A stretch of DNA of 64,000 nt from Bugula neritina (lineage: Eukaryota; Animalia; Bryozoa). The notes under the pieces are model-generated. The model saw only the letters and a list, made by a program, of their open reading frames with translations. It ran no database searches and was not told where the DNA came from. The position numbers and the translations under genes are program-made. The stretch covers positions 1,995,628 through 2,059,627 of the forward strand of contig OZ037771.1 of the NCBI GenBank assembly GCA_964035545.1, given 5' to 3'. Positions 2,670 to 64,000 of this stretch are shown piece by piece (positions within the stretch are counted from its first letter, which is position 1; each line of letters opens with the position of its first letter).

Positions 2670-5610
2670 ATGGAGCTGCTCAGTGGTGGCACTAAAAACA
2701 AAATTCTGGTCGGGGAAAATGTTAAACACCAAAGAGAAGAATTCGGAAGCAAAAGGATTTATTTTTTTGTGCTTTCTGCAGCAGCTGTCCTGATTCTAAA
2801 TTTATACGCTGCTATCAGTCTCTTCCGCACTAGAAGCTCCGTTACATCACTACAACATGAACTATACTGGCAACAGCAGGAGCTCGCAACTCTTGCTAAC
2901 CGGACTGGAAATCTAATACAGATGGAGAAAGAGTTGGCATTGGTGAGAGCTGCTCATGTTTTGATGAATTTAACAGTCTTTATTTGATTTTGAGTTCTTA
3001 ATGCAATCTTTCACTTTATTTATAATGAGATAAATAGTTCATGCTGATAGTACAGAGTTTGAACATCACAAAATTAACTCTTAACAATGAGAAGTCAGCC
3101 CTTTTCACTCTAACTGAAAATAGAGAGTTAAAAGGAGATATTCCATGCAACATGTTACTTCTTCTCACGTTGCTAAGTTGACTAGCTTGTTAGTGCAGAT
3201 AAATATTATTTTTAGAATGATAAATTTCAACACTAAACCATTAGAGTTATGTTGAGTTATTCGTCATGCTAATCACGCTACATATTTCGTTGGAAGGTGC
3301 GACAGAGCTCTCGTACTTATACTGTATCTCAACATACTTTGGTAAAGAGACATGTAGAAGGAAGTGTCATGTCACGATCTTCAATAGATCAATCTCAACC
3401 TTCTAGCATCAGGTTAAAATCATACAGAATTTTAATATTTGCTTAAACATTTACTATAATTGGAGTCTGTAAAAAGCAATGATTTTAAGCAGATTTTAAG
3501 CAGATTTCAAGCAGAAAGCTTAATATATGTTGCAGCTTTTATCGTACTTGTAGAATCAAAATTCTACTAAAAACGTTTTATTTTAAACACTTATCCATTT
3601 GCATGTAGAGAAATTATGATAAAGGATATAAACATGCTATACTAACATTATAGTGCTTGTGTGATAGTCATAAGATGACCGCTAGAATATAATCACTATG
3701 CAATACTGAAACATTCCCTGCTATTAGAGATTTGGATGATTATTGTAGGTACTTAAATAACCATTATTCAAAGCAAGTTATTATATGCCAGTGAGAAAAA
3801 TATAATCAGTACTATGTAATACTTTGAGATTCGGATCATTTTGTATTTAAATAACCATTATTTAAAGCAAATTATTATATGCCAGTGAGAAGTGATTTTG
3901 TATAACATCTAGAGAGTAAATAAAAAACAGTATAAACTCCAACAAAGTTGCATTTTAGAGTTTCATATGTTTAGAATACAAAAGTTACAGGAGTAATCAT
4001 TAAATGTAGTTACTCGTTACATGCCAGTAACTAATGACACATCAGATCTGGTGAACTTACTGCCTTGCATGTATAATTAAGTCATAACCAATAAGGTGTT
4101 TTTCAATACTCCAGGAAACCTGCTACCGAACTGGCATTCAATTTGGACTCAGATGAACATAATCACTGTTCAGGTAAACCTCTTCACAAAGTCTTTTTGT
4201 CTCTTAATGCATGACTGTTTCTTAATTCTCAAATTAGATGTGACACTAGGTGGTTTAAGTGACATGTGGCATCAGGTAGTTTAAGTGACATGTGGCATCA
4301 GGTAGTTTAAGTGACATGTGACATCAGGTGGTTTAAGTGACATGTGGCATCAGATGGTTTAAGTGACATGTGGCATCAGGTGGTTTAAGTGACATGTGGC
4401 ATCAGGCGGTTTAAATGACATGTGACATCAGGTGGTTTATGTGACATGTGGCATCAGGTGGTTTACGTGACATGTGACACTAGGTGGTTTAAGTGACATG
4501 TGGCATCAGGTGGTTTAAATGACATGTGACATCAGGTGGTTTACGTGACATGTGACATCGTGCATTGCTTTCAATTTTATGCCATCAAAATGTTTTAAAG
4601 CAAGTATAACTGAAGTTTATCATCGAATAATGTTTCCATGTGAATAGCATAAAGAAGTAATGTACTTTAAACTTTATTTTGCTGCACTTTCTAGCTTAAT
4701 CTGTTGAATATATTGTTTGAATTTGGAAACCTTGCAGTAGAATATAGAGTTTATAAGGCAACTACTAACTCAGTGTAAATATGATTATCTATAGCAGAGG
4801 CTATGAGTCATAGTCAGAGTTATCTCCTCCTATATATAGCTAGCTGTGTATACTGTATAGTGTATTACTAGAAGACTGTGTAGCCTCATATCTTTTCAAT
4901 TTTTTTAAGGGGCTGTCTACTTAAGGTGGGGGAAATTCTCTTGCCCTCATCGCTCAGTCATTATCTATTCAGGTAAATATGATATTTCAAATATAGGTTT
5001 AAAAAAACATTATTTTAAATGCAATAGTTTCAATATATAACATTTTAATAATATACTCCTATTAACTGAATGGCAAGGCTTGTAGCTGCACATAATAAGC
5101 ACAGCTCTCAATCTCATCAACATCCTTATGTTTTGCATTAGTTCAAAATTTAGGAGGCAACTCGTTTTGAATATTTAAAACTTTAGGTTTGTTTGCATTT
5201 CACGCCAGTTTGTTGTTTCTATTTTAGTTACTTCTAATATTAGTAAAATAATGCATCGTAGAGAATACAAGATTGTAATTATTTTTTTGGTGCTCTTCAA
5301 GTAAGAAGGCCAAAAGAAATCAAAATAGCAGTTATAGTTTACTGGAAGATTAAAAGGATAAGATAAAACATTCTGTCAGTACCAAGGGTGGAAGGTTTTG
5401 ACTTCACTTAACAAGGATTTTCCTAATGAACGCTGTTATAGAAAGTGCTGCTTTCTATAACAGGATTTGCGGCGTCTGCTGATCCTGTGGTTGGTACTGG
5501 AGGGTCTACAAACTTGGAATGCTTGCCTGAGACGCCATCTTGGAACTTGAACTCTCCAGCACATGTTGATGGTGGAACTAAGTTATATCCTGCCAAGCTT
5601 AGTACATGTA

Positions 5611-5675
<65 letters not shown>

Positions 5676-7125
5676 AGAAAGAGGGTTTTTTTAGTTTTTT
5701 AGTTTGAGTAATATATCAATTTTATATTTAAAGAGTACTTTTTTATCAACTCTTATATGTAGTTTTTAAGATTGTCATCATGATTTCAAAGACACACACA
5801 TAAAACACGAAGTATAACCCTAAAACTGGTAATTTTGCTAACATTAATTAAAAATAAAATACAGAAATCAGAGGCTAAATGTTTCAAACAATTTGTAGCT
5901 TGCCTGTTTTCACTTGTAGCAGCACACAAAGGTTCATTTCAAAAAGGTGCAGACGGAGGAGTGATAAGCTGTGCCCTGTGCTACTCGCCCAGGTCACCTG
6001 TGGTAAGTACCTGTGGTAAGGCAGCTACATGCATGTATAGTGAATCTATAGTATGTTAGACATCTCATTTGATAAACTTTATTATGTAAACTTTTTCAGT
6101 ATGGCTGGTTTCCGTCTTTCATGCCTGACCATTTGCTAACTTTGTTCAGATTGAGGAATTTCTAATAATTGTTACTTTGAAAATTAAATTTGGGGTAAAA
6201 CCATTTGACTTATGTTACTGCACCTACATCATAATAGGTGGAAAGGTCTAGCATAATAACCAGAAGATTAAGGGCCAAAAGGCACAAATTTGCTACACTT
6301 CTACTCTGGAACACAGGCTTTCTCATGCAATCTCTCCATTACTGTACCTACCTCAGAATTTCTTTATGTAATATCCTATCACATTTATACAAATAGAAAC
6401 AAGCTACTTTACATAAAAATATCAAATATTTAAGTTTCATCAGGAACCAGACCTTTCATCATTCTCAGATAATTGAAAAGTAAAAACATGGCAGCTTTTT
6501 TTGACACATGATATGTTATGGCAGTCTCGGCATAAATCATAGACGCAATTATTTACTTCTTTTTAAGATAATGATACCAGGAAGAGCAACGTGTCCTGAG
6601 AAGTGGTACATGGAGTATCGGGGTTATCTCATGTCAGCTGAAGGTACTATACTAGTTTTATTCCAGTTTTTAGTCTTATGTAAATAAATAATCAGATGAT
6701 GTACTTACTTACATTTTATACATTATCTGATTGTTTATGTATTTAAGTGTTGAATGAGAATACTATGGAGCCAGGAAATTATAGATTGCTAGCTGTTATA
6801 GTAGTTATAGTGTTATAGCTAGTAGTTTCATAAATAAGCTGTGATATACTTTAAGCATAATGCAAATTCCCTACATGTAAGCTGTAAGCATGATGAAAAA
6901 AGCTATTCTAAAACTTCTTTCATAGCTATAGCTGGGGAACTGCCACTCGGGGCCAAGAACTACTGCCTTGCTAAGAAACCAGACTATTACAGGGAACACC
7001 GTCTATCTAACAGAGGTCTCAAGCTAACAATAGTTCAATTTGGGAGTTGTGACACCAACCACACTCCTTGTTCTGCTTATACTAGTAACTACAGACTAGC
7101 CTGTGTGGTCTGCTCTAAACTTTAG
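2670..7125 (+). CDS. Type II membrane protein with C-terminal short-chain collagen C4-like / NC1-like domain, paralog B (~336 aa)
   Basis: Exons 2670-2942, 3297-3412, 4115-4173, 4910-4972, 5464-5607, 5923-6002 (NAGNAG alternative at 5920), 6568-6643 and 6926-7125 join in frame (1011 nt). There is an N-terminal hydrophobic anchor (IYFFVLSAAAVLILNLYAAISLF) and a heptad-like stalk, then GAVYLRWGKFSCP..IIYSGFAAS..GGSTNLECLPETP..ISCALCYSPR..IMIPGRATCPEKWYMEYRGYLMS..LACVVCSKL*. Intron positions match paralog A (both have a 76-nt penultimate exon). Confidence 0.88.
3753..3891. repeat. Local ~45-bp direct duplication
   Basis: ttaaataaccattatt(c/t)aaagcaa(g/a)ttattatatgccagtgagaa at ~3753 and ~3847. 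Confidence 0.8.
4238..4559. repeat. 26-bp minisatellite (~12 copies)
   Basis: Unit gtgacatgtggcatcaggtggtttaa with point variants; intronic in paralog B. Confidence 0.95.
5611..5668. repeat. (GA)n microsatellite
   Basis: Starts immediately after the donor at 5608. Confidence 0.95.
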
Positions 7126-8311: not shown

Positions 8312-26853
<18,542 letters not shown>

Positions 26854-37668: not shown

Positions 37669-38569
<901 letters not shown>

Positions 38570-38832
38570 GTGTGTGTGCGTGTGTATGTATATGTATGTA
38601 TAATATATAGGTATGTATATGTATATGCGTTTGTGCATGTGTACGTGCATGTGCATGTACATGTACACATGCAGGCCCATGTTCATGTGCATGTGTATTT
38701 GTATGTAAATGTGCATGTACATATGCCTGTATACGTGCAGGTACATGTAAATGTGTATGTACATATGTATGTGTACATGTGTGTTTATGTACATGTACAT
38801 GTGTATGTGTGTGCTCGCGTGTGTGTATGTGT
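38570..38832. repeat. Degenerate (TG)/(ATGTAC) low-complexity repeat
   Basis: Alternating purine-pyrimidine tract of atgtac/atgtgc/gtgt variants. Confidence 0.85.
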
Positions 38833-54720: not shown

Positions 54721-57700
54721 CCAAAATGAGTTAATATAACACTGAGACAAACAGAGCAAAGTAACAATGGCAGCCATTCGTTAACAGTCAAAACTCTCTT
54801 ACTACTTAGCACCAAAAGAAGACAGGAAAAATAAGGTTTTTTTCAGGTAAATGCAATGATGCATAGACTAACATGGAAATCCCAAGTATAGTCACTAACA
54901 TTTGTGCAAGGTAACATCTTATAATTAAATAATAATATTTATGCTAGCATGTCATGTTAAACTACACAGTTGCTAGTGCGGTGTCAAACTATGTAAACTA
55001 TGCGCTTTGAAATTAAATATTTTTCAAGTTGAAATTTTCAATAGAGTTTTTCCTTTTGCAGGAACTAATCTTAGAGAAGCAACTTTAGATTCGTGAGCTA
55101 GTTGACAGAATACCATATGTTTAGGTTTCATAATAAGTCACTTACTAATATAACAGGGTTTGCAATAGAAGACAATTTGCAAGTCATTATGTAGCCGTAA
55201 CAGCAGCAGCTGAGGCAGCAATGGCATGTTCCACATCAGGAAATTGAAGCTCATCTCCTCCAGTTTTTCCAGAGGTAGCTATCATCAACTTCCTCAGTTA
55301 AAGCCTTCCTATTGCATGATCAGGAAAATATAGTTTAAGGTTTTAGGAGAACTAAATTTCCTAGTGGTGTTGGTGGAAAGAATCTAGCAATTGTACAATT
55401 AAGCACAGCAAAAATTGAAAAATATTTTTACCAATTCTCTAGCTATTAGATTTTATTAAGATATCTGGCTATATAGTAGCGTTTTTAAAATAAATAGAAT
55501 GTTGAAAACAAAGCTGGACTTTGAAATAGCTTTCAATTTTCAAAGATACTTCCTTTGTATTAAACAAGCAAGTAACTATTTCAATTAGTATAGCATTAGA
55601 TAATTGAACATCTAAAACTATACAAACACTTTAAAAATAATTTCTTAGATGTATTTGAACATTTATCTTTTACATGAAATATTGAACTATATAGTAGTTG
55701 TCATGTATTAATTAATGTGATTATAATTGCTATGTTACCCAACATTAGTTCAACTTTTAACATCAACAGTCATTTTGTGGCTCATATTTTAACCAAGTGA
55801 CTTGAAAAGTGCCCAATCAGCTAAAGTTGTAAAAACCAATAAACAGAAAAAAACTCAAAAAAATAAAATAAATTCAAATTGTTGACTTTCAGAATCTTCA
55901 GGTAGAATTTCCCATCGCAGCCATGTTCTCTCTATTATCTAAAAATAGCACTTAGGCCTTCATTATTATCATCCTGTGATCTAGGTCTATTATGTATGTG
56001 AGAGAAGTAATTAACAGTTCCACATTTCTGCTAACTGCTAAGCTGCATATATTGCTATTTTTATGCTTTTATGCAAAAATTCCCACTATTGAGTGTGAAA
56101 TGAAAAAGACCAAGAAAAGGAAAACTTTAAATACCATATTGATCAAATCAAATTTTAAGATAGCTTCGTATTTAAAAAATTGAGGAAGTTTTCACTTTTT
56201 AGCAAGGCTATTACAGAGAGTTTGAATCTGCGTTAATTTCTTTATAAACCTAGCAGGCTAATTTATTTAGAAAAAACAATAAGTGTATTAAAAACTAGGA
56301 TATGTCATTGCTTATGCTATAAATCTATACGATTTATACATTTATACAAAAGAAATCTGTACTGAAAACCAATGCTATATTTATTTAATCAGCACTAATT
56401 AAAATTAAATATGTAGCTATAGAATATCTATACTAAAACTTGAGACCTGAAAATAAATTAAAATAGATACATCATAAAATCTAGTGTGGGGCTAATCAGG
56501 CCATTGTAAAAACCAACAATCCTATCGCAAGTTAAACAAATGCTGGTGTATTTCCAGGAATTGGAGATAAGTGGTGTTAAAGATCAACAAACTGAAACTT
56601 CGCTAAGAGCTTCCAAGTAAAAGAAAAAAAACTACCATCAATAAAGTGGGTATAGAGTTGGAAATTGGTTAGACTGTTTTATTTCCATTTCGGTATCAGG
56701 TTTATACACTGTTATATATGTTTACTAGCTTTTATGCTCTATGAGAATATAATATGTTTAAAACATAAAAACCTACATATTATGATACTGTAACATTATG
56801 CTAAAAATAATTCTATTTTTTCAACTGTTCATAGTGAAAAATTTATAAAATTATTTGTTTAATTCTTGCAGTTTGTTTGTCTTTCATCACATATCTGTTG
56901 ATTTTTTAAATAAATTTGTTTTACAATTTGTCTAAACCATTTAAAATCATCAATTCATTTTTATTACCAAAATACCTCATTTGATCGCAAGTTTTCATTG
57001 TTCAATACTGCAAAACCTTTTCCTCTGCTTATTTCATATAATGCACTATTGAAGCCAAAAATTGAATTTAATGTCTAATCCATTTTGCTGCCTGCAACAA
57101 TAGTAATTTCTATTGTGCTAGAAACTATATTAACATTTGCCAAATAATTGAATAAATAATATAATCCAAATACTGTATGAATATTTATTCAAATGAGAAC
57201 TAATTGTGAGGAGAATAATTTTTGCTAATGTTATTAAGTTTTGATTAAGTTGTGGTTGCATTTGCATGAACATAATGCGAAGCAATGGGAGCGCGGTGAT
57301 ATACTCCCCACTTCTCATTAGCCATGTATAAGAATTCTACTAATAAAATAATCTTATTAATTTTACCGCAGGGTCAATAAACAAATATTTAAAACTTTTC
57401 TATGCCTCTCCGGTTGTCAACAATTGTATTACTATTTCCAACCATGTATAGCAACATAATTCAATAAGTAATTACAGTGTTTCATATCAATAAATATTTC
57501 ACAAGATATTAATTTTTTAGCTTTATGAGAAGACAAGCTTTTAAAAAGTACTGCTATGTTAATTATACTATTAGACATTATTTTCAACACATTCTGTTAT
57601 TTAACTTTACAGAACACTGATGACTGTATCACTGGTTTATAGCCTGCAACATGAAACATTATTTCCTACACTCACCACTTTCCATTAGCTCTTCATTGAC

Positions 57701-57737
57701 CAGTCCAGTTACTCCAGTTTAGTATTGGAGAAAATAA

Positions 57738-60135
57738 ATGGCGGTATGACTCAATTCTATAGCACTTGCTACACTCTGTCATATACAGAGTACTTGCTGT
57801 GCTATGCCATTCTATATTAACATTTTAGAAATGCTTTACTGTCTCCTTATCTAAACAAACATGTACATTAGAAAATGTTCATTGTTTAATCACCAACACA
57901 CAAACTTAGATAATACCTGCTAACAGCAAATCAAAGCTCTGCATTTCAAATCAGTTTCACTTTATATTTGTGAATGAAATTATTGGCTGCTCTTCACAAA
58001 TTGTAGAAAATTATAATTCCAGAAGGTGTTATGGACAAACAATTAACGAATTATAAGCATAGTTTTGCTATGCGCAGTCATCAATACATGACATAATGGC
58101 AATTAAGTCTGCCTATTGGATATTTCAATTTGTAATTTGCAAAAATGGTATTGATAGCTTCTTCTGGGTTCTATTGGAAGATTTTAAAACCTGGTTCCTC
58201 TTTGTCAAGTATATATAAAGCTAAAACATGAAATTTATCACAACAAAACCTTCTAACCACATCCTACGTAGTCTTATTAATTTGACATAATTAGTTGAAT
58301 ACTGCAACATTATGGACAATATTAAAGCTATTTTAGCTCTTCTTTTAGTAACAGGTTGGTACTCTTATTTTACTTTATTTTAAATATATGGCATAAACTA
58401 ATATGTTGTCAAATATCATCTTTTGAAAATTAAATATTACATAATGTATTTCAATGTACGTACTACATTGATCCAAATGTAACGCTAATATTATATTCAA
58501 ATATATAACTTACTGCATTACTTTTTCTGTGCTCTGTAATTAATTTTAGCTGCTTCTGTTTTGCCATTTTTAGTGACAGCAGGAAATCCATTGCCTTCAA
58601 TTGAAGACACAGACCTCAATGGGCCGTGGGCGTCTATCTCATGGTTCTATCTGGATGAATTTTTAGTAAGTCAAAAATATGAATCTTTCAAATAAAATAT
58701 ACAGCAACATTATATAATACTTATATATTGCAACCAAGATAAGATGCCTTAGTCTAAAATAAATTAAAATACATAATGATATAAAACAGTCTTAATTAGT
58801 TGCAAAAATCTGTTTTCTAGGTATTGGTTCCGCTGTTGATATAGCGTACGGCAAGAATAATAAGCTGACATTTTATAAACTGATTTTAAAACTGTTTTCT
58901 TAATTTACAGACAAGTCTTGGTGATTTTGCCCAAGTAGAGACTTCTGCAGAGTGTATTGCCACATGTGAAGGAAACATAGACCTTGAACAGGTAAAACTA
59001 AAATAAAATATTTTATCTGAACAAGTAGATTATCCCCTTGATATTTTGCTTAAGGCAAATCAAATTATATTTCAGTTAAACATTCCTATATGCTAAAAGT
59101 CATCAGTATAAACTTCAACACAAATTCACACGAACTCACTCACAAGTTTATAGTCACTATCCCTGTGAGAAACCCCTGATAGAAAGGGTTTTTCTTAAAG
59201 CGGGCTAAGGACTTATTTAAATGAGGCACAGGAGCAATTATGACTGGATGCTTTTCCTAACATCACCAATGGCCTTTGTCAGGGCTCGAACCCATGACCT
59301 CGTGTTTACTAGGCAAACGCTCTAACCCCTATACCACGGCTGCATTCACACAAGTCACGTTTAAATATTATTCTAGTATGAGATTTAACCACAGGATGTA
59401 CAGTGATTTATATCATGATGAAAAGAAATATTTTCTGTTGCAGATGCACCAAGACATGTTTGACGCATACAACAAGTTCCTGAATTACCCAACGCTAAAT
59501 AACCAAAATTATGTTGACGCTAGAGATGCATTGCTGAAAGTTTTAGGTGGTCTTTCCAGCCATAATCATACAGATAATACTTACACTACAGGTAAATTAA
59601 TAAGAAATATCTTTTACATTACATGTAAGTTAATAAGAGATAATACTTACACTAAATGCAGTATTTTAAGGTAACAATTGTGACAACACCATTAATAATG
59701 ACAGTTATATCATAAATAATTATTACAAGCATAATAGTAGTAACAAAAAACAACCTAAATCTTATTGTCATCAGTTTTGTCAATAGAATATATTTTATAT
59801 CTTTCAATGCATTAATTTTAAAAGCATGGTAGAAAATTTTATCAACTTATGCTGTATATGTTGTATACCATTTTATTTCAATATTCTTTAAATAAAAAAG
59901 GATATAATAAGAAATTGTACTGCCAAAGGTTATGGATATTTTTGATAATAATATTTAATGAAAATACTTATACAGAAGGTACAGTGTCTTGTATATCTAG
60001 TATTTTATAACTTATTGCACCTCTCTGAGTTTATTTCTGCCATATAGACTCATTATTGATATGATTACAGGCTGGCTGTGTGGTGCAAAGACTCTGCATT
60101 CTATTCTCTACTGTCTGGGATATGGACAGGACTAA
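57738..60135 (+). CDS. Small secreted protein of unknown family (153 aa), predicted alpha-helical / cytokine-like
   Basis: Exons 57738-57743 (ATG GCG), 58078-58147, 58574-58665, 58911-58991, 59444-59591 and 60071-60135 join in frame (462 nt): MASSIHDIMAIKSAYWIFQFVICKNVTAGNPLPSIEDTDLNGPWASISWFYLDEFLTSLGDFAQVETSAECIATCEGNIDLEQMHQDMFDAYNKFLNYPTLNNQNYVDARDALLKVLGGLSSHNHTDNTYTTGWLCGAKTLHSILYCLGYGQD*. The N-terminus is signal-peptide-like with a likely cleavage at TAG|NPLP, and the mature chain has 4 Cys. The first two exons are less certain than the last four. Confidence 0.72.
59145..59343 (-). mobile_element. tRNA-derived SINE (best-preserved copy), antisense in an intron of the secreted-protein gene
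   Basis: The - strand reads GCAGCCGTGGTATAGGGGTTAGAGCGTTTGCCTAGTAAACACGAGGTCATGGGTTCGAGCCCTGAC, with an A box, a B box (GGTTCGAGCCC) and a Thr(AGT)-like loop CTAGTAA. It continues into the body GGCCATTGGTGATGTTAGGAAAAGCATCCAGTC, shared with two other copies in the window. Confidence 0.85.
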
Positions 60136-61376
60136 AACTGGGTACAGAAGTAGTATATCAAAGTAACTAATGATGGAGTTATAACGATATATTCTTCTCT
60201 ACTTGACAATGGCCTCATATATTTCTCTTCCATTTGAACTAGATAACAATGATCATTTCCTACCATCCCGGTGTCATATTTAATTAAACTGAAATTTTTA
60301 TTTAAAGTTCTAGTAAATTTTTATAATTTTACTGAATCTTAATTGCTTAGTGAGTTATAGAATAAAACTCTCATATACTACTTTTAAACTTTCCAACTCT
60401 TTCTGCTGTAGTTTTAGATTCTAAATAAAGAAGATAATCTTAACTGATATAAAATCTTATTTAATATGCAAACCATCATTTCGCATTAGGTATATTGTTA
60501 AAAGGTAACTCTCAACTCTCAAATAGCCTATATACAGCATTCACAAATTGATATCAAAACAAGAATTCAACGAAAATAGTCCTATAGCACTCTCAGTCTG
60601 ACTAAATCTTGCATCTATCCAAACAAAACAAAGTGTTTTATTTTACTAAACTTACACAAAACACATTATGCTTCTTAATATAGCAGTTTAAAGATTCTAT
60701 TTTTGTTATTTTGTTATTCTGTTATGTAAGTTTTCTTAAAAGAAAAGATAATTCTAGACAATCATATAGCTTAACGTAATTGAGATCCCAAATGTTCTTA
60801 TATATATGAACAGGTAGCCTTGTGAAAGCTGTAACTGCAATCAATGATTAAAATTATAAAAATTTTGACAGAAATAATACACACATTGAGCAAAAGGAAA
60901 TATTGCAAACTTTGGTTATACATCAAGCAAAAATAAATAGAATAAAGAGTTTCGGCTACATGTATATATCATAGCAGATATTAATATTGCAGCAGATTAT
61001 ATTAAAACTGCATTCTTTAGGATAGATCAAAAGAATATATACTAATTCATTGCTAAACCACTAAATCCTTATTTTAAAAACATTCTACCACCTTTGAATT
61101 GGTTGTAAATCTGAATACATACTTCTATGTATATCAAGTGTGTAGTTCTTTCTATACAAAACTGTTTATTATTTCTATTCAAAGTTAAAATAAAATTATG
61201 GACACTAATTTTAAAAAAATATGCAAAGTGTACCAAAAAATCTACTATCTATAAATCACAAAGTAAAAAATAAGTAAAAAAGTTAAAAGCTTATGATCAA
61301 GTGAGTAAGTAGGAATGTATAAATTAATACAGTAGATGTTTAATATAAAAGCAAGCTGAAGCCCATAAATTGTTGG

Positions 61377-64000
61377 TTAGAATGATAAATACGCATCTCT
61401 AACGTAGCCTGTAAGTGTGCTTGGCTCCATATATCTACAAAATACAGCAATAGACACATAAATTGACAGCAACAAAAACAACAAAAATATACAAAAGCAG
61501 TAATATACAACACTATATATACTCAACACTAGTAATGTAAAACAAAAGTAATGTACAGGAGTAAATAGTAAGTACAGGAGTAAATAGTAAGTACAGGAGT
61601 AAATAGTAAGTACAGGAGTAAATAGTAAGTACAGGAGTAAATAGTAAGTACAGGAGTAAATAGTAAGTACAGGAGTAAATAGTAAGTACAGGAGTAAATA
61701 GTAAGTACAGGAGTAAATAGTAAGTACAGGAGTAAATAGTAAGTACAGGAGTAAGTAGTAAGTACAGGAGTAAGTAGTAAGTACAGGAGTAAATAGTAAG
61801 TACAGGAGTAAATAGTAAGTACAGGAGTAAATAGTAAGTACAGGAGTAAGTAGTAAGTACAGGAGTAAATAGTAAGTACAGGAGTAAATAGTAAGTACAG
61901 GAGTAAATAGTAAGTACAACAAAGCTGTTTAAAATATAACTACCCATCATCATTTTCTGTTACAGTATTGTGACAGAAATTTCCGGATTTCAAAAGCTGT
62001 CGTGCATTTAATGGTGACTGTGGCAGTTCGGTTTGTGATAAGCAAGTTGGTGGTGGTGAGACGGTTTCAAGAGACAGATAGCTTTGCTCTGTCACTGCAC
62101 CATGGGCTACAGTTGGTTGATAAGGTACGGGTGGTAGAGTGCTACCCCCTTTGTTTTGTGGAGAGGCCCTCTGCAAAGCCATAGTTTGAGGATAACATTG
62201 TCCAGCATTACATTTCCCTTCAAAGTTGCTTTCTGAATGATGGGAGAGAGTTGAAACTTCTATAAATTAGCAGCAAAATATTTCATCAAACTATTATGTT
62301 ATTGCCTAATCAATTACAGGCAAAAATTAAAGTCATGTAATTATTTGCATTCTGCTTTTGTTTCTCAGATCTTATTGAGAATTTTCTTTTAGAAGTAAGG
62401 CACATACAGCCACAGAAAATACGTCATAATATTTTCAACTGCATGAACTGAATTTGATGTGAAAAACAAAAAGTTTGTATGTTGCACAGGCCATTATGAG
62501 TAGTTGATAACTTTAATATACAAATATTAAAGCAATCTAAAATATAAAAATAATAATATATTATGATAATATATTACATCATATGTATTATAATGTGATA
62601 CAATATAATATAATTATAGCATATAATAATTTACATACCTTGGAAGTTTGTTTTTCTACAACTTTCTGAAGGCAGATGATTCTGGCAACAACGCATACTA
62701 AAATGTATTCAAAGTAACATAATTTAGATATCCTTCAATTATTGCAAATAAGGTTACAAATGAAAGTTTTTTTATGTATAAGCCCAAAGTTCAAACAAAA
62801 ATATAGTCAAGGAATTTGGAAATATTGTTTACATACCACACTCCGGCCTTCTGTATAATGACACTCAATACGATTACACTGACTGACAGAATCACAACTA
62901 AGACTGCCAAAATAGTGATAGTGCTAGAAGGGGAGGTCGCTAAAATAGGTACATATAATTGTGTATTATAAATTATATGTTATGACATTTTTAGTATATA
63001 AGGTAAATTTTGAAATTAATTCATTATTTTTATCACAATTGAGTTGCAAAAGCCCTGCATCTATAGACCTCTTTGAAACACGTTTACACTAATTGAAGTT
63101 ATTTCAACAGCACACTAATCAAAAATAAATATAACATTTTTCAGCAGCTTTAAATCATTTCTGAGTAAACTAAGCTCTAAAAATTAAAGTTGTCAAGTAG
63201 GGGTTACTAGCAAGCTCCCTATTGAGCTCATATAAAAAACATATAGCAGTGCAAAACCTGACAAATGAAATAAAGGTGTGAAAATTTTGCCAATTTTCAA
63301 TCTATGACTGCTTTTTCTTTGTTCCCAATAAACAACCTCACATTAAACACATTAATTAAACTATTATCTGGAAATAACATTTTTAATTCTATTTTTCAAT
63401 TATATCCTTTAAGTTACGAAAAAATTGTACCTACAAAATTACACTAATTTTGAAGTACTTTGAATATTAAAACCCACTTTAGCATAATTGGCTAGTGAAT
63501 AGTATTTTTAATTTTTATAGAACAAAAAATGCAGTAAGTATAATTTTATATTTTACTTAATTAAAAAATTCAGTCACATATTATAAAGTTTTCAATTATA
63601 ATAGAACAGAAATTGCATAGAAGTGTACAAAACTAATATAGTAGTAAAATCAAAAATATAAAGAAAAATATTATTAACGTATAATAATTATATGAATCAT
63701 TTTATTTAATATTTTTGCAATGTTGAATGCAGCTGATAATTTTAAAGCTTGCTAAATCATTAATTGTTTAAACACTGCTACCTAATAAATGTTAAAATTT
63801 TATTTAGATGTAATAGATATACTTTTAGTTAAACAAAGTAATTTTTATGAAGGTGTACTAAAATTTTAAAACTATATTTTTTTATTTAAAGTAGACCTTT
63901 CATGTACAAAATGCAACAAGCTGTGAATTACTATATGATGATCAAAGTAATAAAACAAACTAAAAATATGTTAGATCATACCTTTGCTGATTGCTGGAGA
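61377..64000 (-). CDS. 3' part of a single-pass (type I-like) membrane receptor with Tyr-rich cytoplasmic tail; ectodomain outside window
   Basis: Exons >64000-63982, 62939-62837, 62697-62639, 62259-61944 and 61434-61377 are phase-consistent. Translation: ..SPAISKATSPSSTITILAVLVVILSVSVIVLSVIIQKAGVCMRCCQNHLPSESCRKTNFQEVSTLS...CYPQT...PYQPT...SYLSL...ENDDGYMEPSTLTGYVRDAYLSF*. It has one TM helix, a juxtamembrane Cys cluster and a ~150-aa low-complexity tail with no kinase domain. Confidence 0.8.
61553..61917. repeat. 19-bp minisatellite (~19 near-identical copies)
   Basis: Unit gtacaggagtaaatagtaa. It fills most of the last intron of the receptor-like gene. Confidence 0.97.

Follow-up and report, generated by a model that had tools for sequence, protein, structure and literature searches.

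A Bugula-restricted gene for a putative small secreted protein with a predicted four-helix chain

A five-exon gene and its product

A chromosome-level genome of the bryozoan Bugula neritina has been published (PMC11480708). The window, by which we mean the whole stretch of 64,000 nucleotides (nt) analysed here (assembly GCA_964035545.1, contig OZ037771.1, positions 1,995,628 to 2,059,627), carries on its plus strand, at positions 58312-60135, a gene for a small, predicted secreted protein. It has five coding exons separated by GT-AG introns, and the exons, joined by a local script, form a single open frame. A first-pass annotation of this DNA had proposed six exons, the first of them at 57738, and a protein of 153 amino acids. 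Five GT-AG exons in one frame are found, but the exon at 57738 is not supported: an in-frame TAA (58288-58290) stands just 5' of the start codon (ATG, 58312), a TATA-like box occupies 58211-58218, and the homologous ATG is the start both in the annotated NCBI orthologue (P0001, 144 amino acids, from another B. neritina assembly, GCA_010799875.2) and in a paralogue that is described below.

Exon 1 (58312-58354, 43 nt) contains the ATG and the first 14 residues of the signal peptide, ends at a GT donor and is followed by a phase 1 intron. Exon 2 (58574-58665, 92 nt with the preferred acceptor) completes the signal peptide and encodes a disordered N-terminus followed by predicted helix A. An alternative acceptor at 58550 is also in frame and would add eight residues. 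The acceptor at 58574 appears preferable because the resulting 92-nt exon equals exon 2 of the paralogue and matches P0001; the 24 nt ahead of it are a pyrimidine-rich tract ending in AG. The protein is 142 amino acids long with this acceptor and 150 with the one at 58550, in place of the 153 first proposed. Exon 3 (58911-58991, 81 nt) is in phase 0 at both ends and encodes the AB loop with its conserved CxxxC. Exon 4 (59444-59591, 148 nt) encodes helix B, the BC loop, helix C and the CD loop with a conserved HNH, and is followed by a phase 1 intron. Exon 5 (60071-60135, 65 nt including the TAA stop) encodes helix D, with two Cys, and the C-terminal tail. The intron phases, read directly from the joined model, are 1,0,0,1, as the first-pass annotation had given them.

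At the N-terminus, the n-region contains a Lys, the hydrophobic stretch is 12-13 residues long, and the residues at -3 and -1 ahead of NPLPS are small. By heuristic reading the n-, h- and c-regions persist across the gene, its orthologue and its paralogue despite sequence divergence, which bears out the signal-peptide-like N-terminus noted at first pass. From these features we infer that the protein is secreted. The mature chain is acidic, with 17 Asp/Glu to 4 Lys/Arg and an isoelectric point (pI) of 4.2. It contains no dibasic sites, and its single N-glycosylation sequon is absent from the orthologue. There are four Cys: the CxxxC, located as first described in the long AB loop of exon 3, and the pair in helix D. 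The members of the helix D pair are spaced 11 residues from each other, too far for a bond between them within a helix; the putative arrangement is therefore a disulfide from each to the CxxxC in the AB loop. In growth hormone and prolactin a disulfide likewise ties a loop to helix D. The putative disulfides would be compatible with an AB loop lying along helix D in the manner of these hormones.

The TATA-like box (58211-58218, plus strand) is approximately 100 nt 5' of the ATG. The paralogue has a counterpart 92 nt 5' of its own ATG, and a role in the promoter is plausible. On the 3' side, a pattern count gives three candidate polyadenylation hexamers on the plus strand at 60283-60429, starting 148, 226 and 289 nt from the stop.

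Two further observations concern the introns. A 33-nt unit that takes in the last part of exon 4 with its splice donor recurs in 2.6 copies reaching into intron 4 (59572-59658; 72% matches), the later copies being without the same GT donor context. A stretch of intron 3 (approximately 59160-59345) resembles a minus-strand tRNA-derived short interspersed element (SINE) and holds a GGCTCGAACCC-type box. This stretch is missing from the aligned intron of the sibling species, where the BLAST match breaks. Neither ARAGORN nor Rfam makes a call on the SINE-like stretch; ARAGORN finds no tRNA in the window and Rfam has no match in the gene region (57000-62500).

Relatives, selection and a diverged paralogue

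The exons were searched one by one, with P0001 standing in for the whole protein. Among 1.84 billion protein cluster representatives the sole match at E ≤ 0.001 is the protein's own cluster. Neither the single exons nor P0001 match any Pfam family at E ≤ 10, the cytokine and the lipid- and odorant-binding families included, and a search of PDB sequences gives nothing below E 0.6. The description of an orphan protein has thus held: there is no detectable homologue outside the lineage among these representatives, and there is constraint inside it. On sequence searches the family has so far been seen solely in the Bugula neritina species complex, a breadth limited to what the searched collections cover, bryozoan genomes being scarce in them. 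A locus 834 kb upstream on the same chromosome (L014) has similarity to the protein at the level of noise only (best E 0.67). A likeness to the insulin B-chain was considered and rejected on reading of the sequence: the Cys spacing of LCG...L...C is 10, compared with the 11 of insulin, and there is no A-chain motif.

Is this a gene under selection, or a chance open frame? The locus of the second assembly (L006, GCA_010799875.2, contig VXIV02003178.1) serves for comparison. The exons are 92% identical between the two loci and the introns 78%. Exon 4 is 92% identical to the B. neritina proteins P0001 and P0002. Two indels, each of 3 nt, separate the exons from those of this locus, and every splice site is preserved. 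Because the introns differ by approximately 22%, we take GCA_010799875.2 to come from a sibling lineage within the B. neritina complex. By the Nei-Gojobori method the ratio of nonsynonymous to synonymous divergence (dN/dS) between the lineages is 0.135 and 0.209 for the mature part, at a synonymous divergence (dS) of approximately 0.19. Over the whole chain, signal region included, it is 0.32-0.37, and raised values over signal peptides are usual. For the paralogue, measured against a genomic Logan contig from the sibling species (L007), dN/dS is 0.215. Since the ratios are low in each, both the gene and its paralogue are, by this measure, under purifying selection. To judge from its sequence this is a real protein-coding gene under such selection. 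That the locus is non-functional, as a chance open frame or a decaying duplicate, would fit the lack of relatives outside Bugula. It is very improbable given that the frame, the splice sites and the in-frame character of the indels are conserved across the siblings, and that an old paralogue (dS approximately 1) keeps an equal structure and is itself constrained.

The number of copies appears to vary in this complex. Within the sibling locus there are two tandem, near-identical copies, at 10001-11914 and 14100-16003. The sibling assembly as a whole has at least seven gene models, whereas the genome studied here has one copy and one old paralogue. The sibling models comprise the 144-amino-acid orthologues EB796_021304, 021305, 021310 and 014940 and the partial models 016201, 021307 and 021309, all unnamed and all without a Pfam domain. 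The protein cluster consists of four models of 144 amino acids and one of 91 from this assembly; two further partial models fall outside it. The EB796 orthologues are like the gene studied here in having the same exons, with exon 4 at 92% identity. They are unlike it in forming several near-identical tandem copies, with introns approximately 78% identical and dS approximately 0.19. The additional copies may represent true copy-number variation or uncollapsed haplotypes in a draft assembly. The NCBI models of GCA_010799875.2 were built by AUGUSTUS with transcriptome hints (PMC7576161); they are independent support for the exon structure, not proof of expression.

The distribution of copies bears on what the protein may do. 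One possibility is that it is a secreted helical protein that does not signal but carries or binds another molecule, acts as an effector in defence, or belongs to a matrix of cuticle, adhesive or skeleton. Secreted families that are taxon-restricted and variable in copy number typically have roles of this sort, and the present family is confined to Bugula, differs sharply in copy number between the two assemblies and has a strongly acidic chain. Some of the draft-assembly copies may, as noted, be uncollapsed haplotypes. In addition, repeats or disorder are usual in the proteins of matrices and adhesives, while the present protein is compact, non-repetitive and constrained (dN/dS approximately 0.14-0.2), and no lipid- or odorant-binding family is matched in Pfam. 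We regard a non-signalling role as a substantial possibility that falls well short of even odds.

A search of the 216.0-Mb assembly (321 contigs) with the single exons finds exactly one further locus, the paralogue (L002), 49 kb away on the opposite strand; its exon 4 is 35% identical (E 0.0025). The paralogue has five exons of 37, 92, 81, 148 and 65 nt, with phases equal to those of the present gene. The proteins are approximately 40% identical overall. The most conserved parts are helix B and the stretch of helix D with the tail, in which 19 of 21 residues agree. Both exon 3 Cys are kept in all copies. Between the paralogues all four Cys are invariant, as are four His, namely those of the HNH motif and two more. 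An unrelated gene apparently lies between the paralogues, in locus L009 (G000:C7:2079628-2089627), where minus-strand exons at approximately 3100-6200 encode von Willebrand factor type C/chordin-like cysteine repeats.

The invariant residues might be taken as ligands for a metal. In that case the protein would bind Cu or Zn outside the cell through its Cys and through His in the HNH of the CD loop, at the start of helix B and in helix D. That four Cys and four His survive between proteins with some 40% identity, and that the paralogue has 9 His, would agree with this. However, no known metal-binding motif or family is matched in Pfam or among PDB sequences, and the Cys of secreted proteins are normally in disulfides; metal binding seems to us improbable.

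Exon 5 sets itself apart from the rest of the paralogue pair. A tract of 82 nt, running from the last 6 bases of intron 4 through exon 5 into the first 11 bases of the 3' untranslated region (60065-60146 of the window; approximately 982-1063 on the minus strand of L002), is 92.7% identical between the paralogues, as against only 49-58% in exons 2-4. The near-identity extends to synonymous sites, while elsewhere dS is saturated. The tract may reflect a short gene conversion or a constraint at the level of nucleotides.

The predicted chain and its possible partner

Residues 20-144 of P0001 were folded with AlphaFold2 (AF2), both with an alignment and as a single sequence. The alignment (A3) is shallow and has information from the paralogue only for exons 4 and 5. 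With it the model has a predicted local distance difference test score (pLDDT) of 51.6 and a predicted template modelling score of 0.46; from the single sequence these are 56.7 and 0.56. The ESM Atlas model has a pLDDT of 0.43. Four helices are predicted in both AF2 runs, at mature residues of approximately 14-33, 52-67, 75-92 and 103-119. The AB loop is then approximately 18-21 residues, the BC loop 7 and the CD loop 10-11. The first-pass annotation had described four amphipathic helices joined by a long AB, a short BC and a long CD loop. The helices are predicted at the places it gave. Of the four, B and D are significantly amphipathic when compared with shuffled sequences (P 0.006 and 0.004); this does not extend to A and C. 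In the models its AB and BC loops stand, but the CD loop is short.

The same annotation had suggested that a structure prediction followed by Foldseek might reveal a cytokine fold. For neither AF2 model does Foldseek find anything in the PDB at E ≤ 0.001. Helical cytokines dominate the weak matches of both runs (E 0.5-3, template modelling (TM) scores 0.2-0.41), making up 12 of the top 14 for the first model and most of the top 50 for the second. When the Foldseek lists are re-aligned with VIA-align, each alignment covers all four helices in order. Unrelated bundles reach structural scores no lower than these. We read the models as having a cytokine-like topology at low confidence, with E at least 0.5, TM at most 0.41 and pLDDT of 51.6 and 56.7. 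Because the alignment is so shallow, the AF2 models largely restate the layout rather than test it. AF2 may simply return the topology that is usual in the PDB for such a pattern of helices and loops.

The reading we favour, with a probability of about 0.6, is that this is a Bugula-restricted gene for a secreted preprotein of approximately 142 amino acids, with a predicted four-helix chain that binds an extracellular partner. A signal peptide of approximately 18 residues would be removed to leave an acidic chain of approximately 124 residues with a pI of approximately 4.2. This chain would fold into a four-helix bundle in which two disulfides join the CxxxC to the helix D Cys, which lie on a single face of that helix, and hold the long AB loop against it. 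The protein would most likely act outside the cell, binding its partner through the near-invariant helix D and the C-terminal tail, as well as through helix B. A receptor of the gp130/Domeless type is one possible partner among several.

Several points weigh against this. The low confidence of the models (pLDDT 0.43-0.57 across AF2 and the ESM Atlas) makes the packing of the bundle and the pairing of the disulfides guesses. In the comparison with shuffles, helices A and C fall short of significant amphipathicity (P 0.10 and 0.39). The protein cluster has 5 members, each an NCBI gene model, and the spliced product of the present gene is not one of them. Finally, if the exon 5 tract arose by conversion, the near-invariance of helix D and the tail could be explained in that way.

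Elsewhere in the window, long open reading frames coincide with repeats. A minisatellite at 61547-61918 (a 19-nt unit repeated 19.5 times, 98% matches), 1.4 kb 3' of the gene, explains the long frames at 61377-61953. A (TA)n microsatellite of 860 bp occupies 37690-38548, and TGTGYA repeats come after it at 38569-38810. The long frames in several reading frames around 37690-38810 all come from these repeats, and none has a Pfam match.

The cytokine question and known ligands

Could the protein be a class I helical cytokine, not only in shape but in function? It would then form an up-up-down-down bundle, serve as ligand of a bryozoan receptor of the gp130/Domeless type and activate JAK/STAT signalling. 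JAK and STAT occur across animals. To our knowledge, extracellular JAK/STAT ligands are known only in vertebrates, in insects (Upd) and, as a lectin, in one crustacean. According to a 2026 survey, no IL-6-like ligand has so far been found in the majority of invertebrates (PMC13203501). In the present genome, STAT_bind exons at two loci (42 and 36 bits) and a JAK-type FERM_F2 exon (35 bits) are over the Pfam cut-offs, while a Jak1_Phl domain was not found in a scan of this genome. The predicted layout of the preprotein, with a signal peptide followed by a helix, a long loop, a helix, a short loop, a helix, a loop and a helix, would suit such a ligand, and the weak Foldseek lists of both models consist mostly of cytokines.

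The exon structure has also been held to point this way. The class I cytokine gene pattern is five exons with a phase 1 intron in the signal region and phase 0 introns thereafter. The phases 1,0,0,1 of the present gene are near the 1,0,0,0 of growth hormone and IL-6-class genes, agreeing at three of the four introns. Little weight should be given to this, as a phase 1 intron after the signal exon is common in genes for secreted proteins and phase 0 elsewhere is common too. A likeness to helix D of IL-6, proposed at first pass as the pattern WL....T..H.IL, does not count as evidence: it needs a shift of one residue, and its Thr is Met in the paralogue.

Several results speak against a cytokine. 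No Foldseek match reaches E 0.001 and the TM score is at most 0.41, and the models themselves, at pLDDT 52-57, are not independent of the loop pattern if single-sequence AF2 defaults to a PDB topology. The CD loop is short. No cytokine family in Pfam is matched even at E 10. Cytokine families are known to diverge past sequence recognition, and a missing profile match does no more than lower the chance of membership. Scans for receptor domains, made exon by exon and insensitive on split genes, gave none over the cut-off: there are 0 matches to IL6Ra-bind, 0 to EpoR_lig-bind, and Lep_receptor_Ig reaches 21.5 bits where the cut-off is 28.8.

A cytokine-type fold is, on these models, a possibility of some weight but a doubtful one. 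A role as JAK/STAT ligand is unlikely, and that the protein is a true up-up-down-down helical cytokine acting on a gp130/Domeless-like receptor of the bryozoan is unlikely to a slightly greater degree. The cytokine interpretation is compatible with all observations, and the models would make of the protein a weak cytokine candidate. A constrained secreted protein with a predicted four-helix chain, in an animal with JAK and STAT, is nevertheless a concrete candidate ligand that can be expressed. If it were a true cytokine, no helical cytokine would have been identified before it in a lophotrochozoan, and it would be the 'missing ligand' of JAK/STAT outside insects and vertebrates. If it is not, it is an ordinary lineage-restricted secreted protein of a bryozoan, of interest mainly for the conversion-like identity of exon 5 and the difference in copy number from the sibling lineage.

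Among known systems, the closest comparison is with the long-chain class I helical cytokines, such as leptin, G-CSF, IL-6, CNTF, growth hormone and prolactin. The putative bryozoan protein differs from these in having no sequence or profile similarity to them, in its shorter helices (16-20 residues) and chain (approximately 124 residues), in a CD loop of 10-11 residues and in a last intron of phase 1. It is like them in being small and, as predicted, secreted, with four predicted helices, a long AB loop and a short BC loop, and in having five coding exons with a phase 1 intron in the signal region. With growth hormone and prolactin it further shares Cys in the AB loop and helix D, and with IL-6 a Trp at the start of helix D. 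The second comparison is with the invertebrate JAK/STAT ligands of Drosophila, Unpaired (Upd1-3). The Upd proteins are approximately three times longer, basic and glycosylated, and no similarity to them was found among the 1.84 billion representatives. Like the protein described here, they are secreted and predicted to be helical, and they would share its role if it does prove to be a cytokine.

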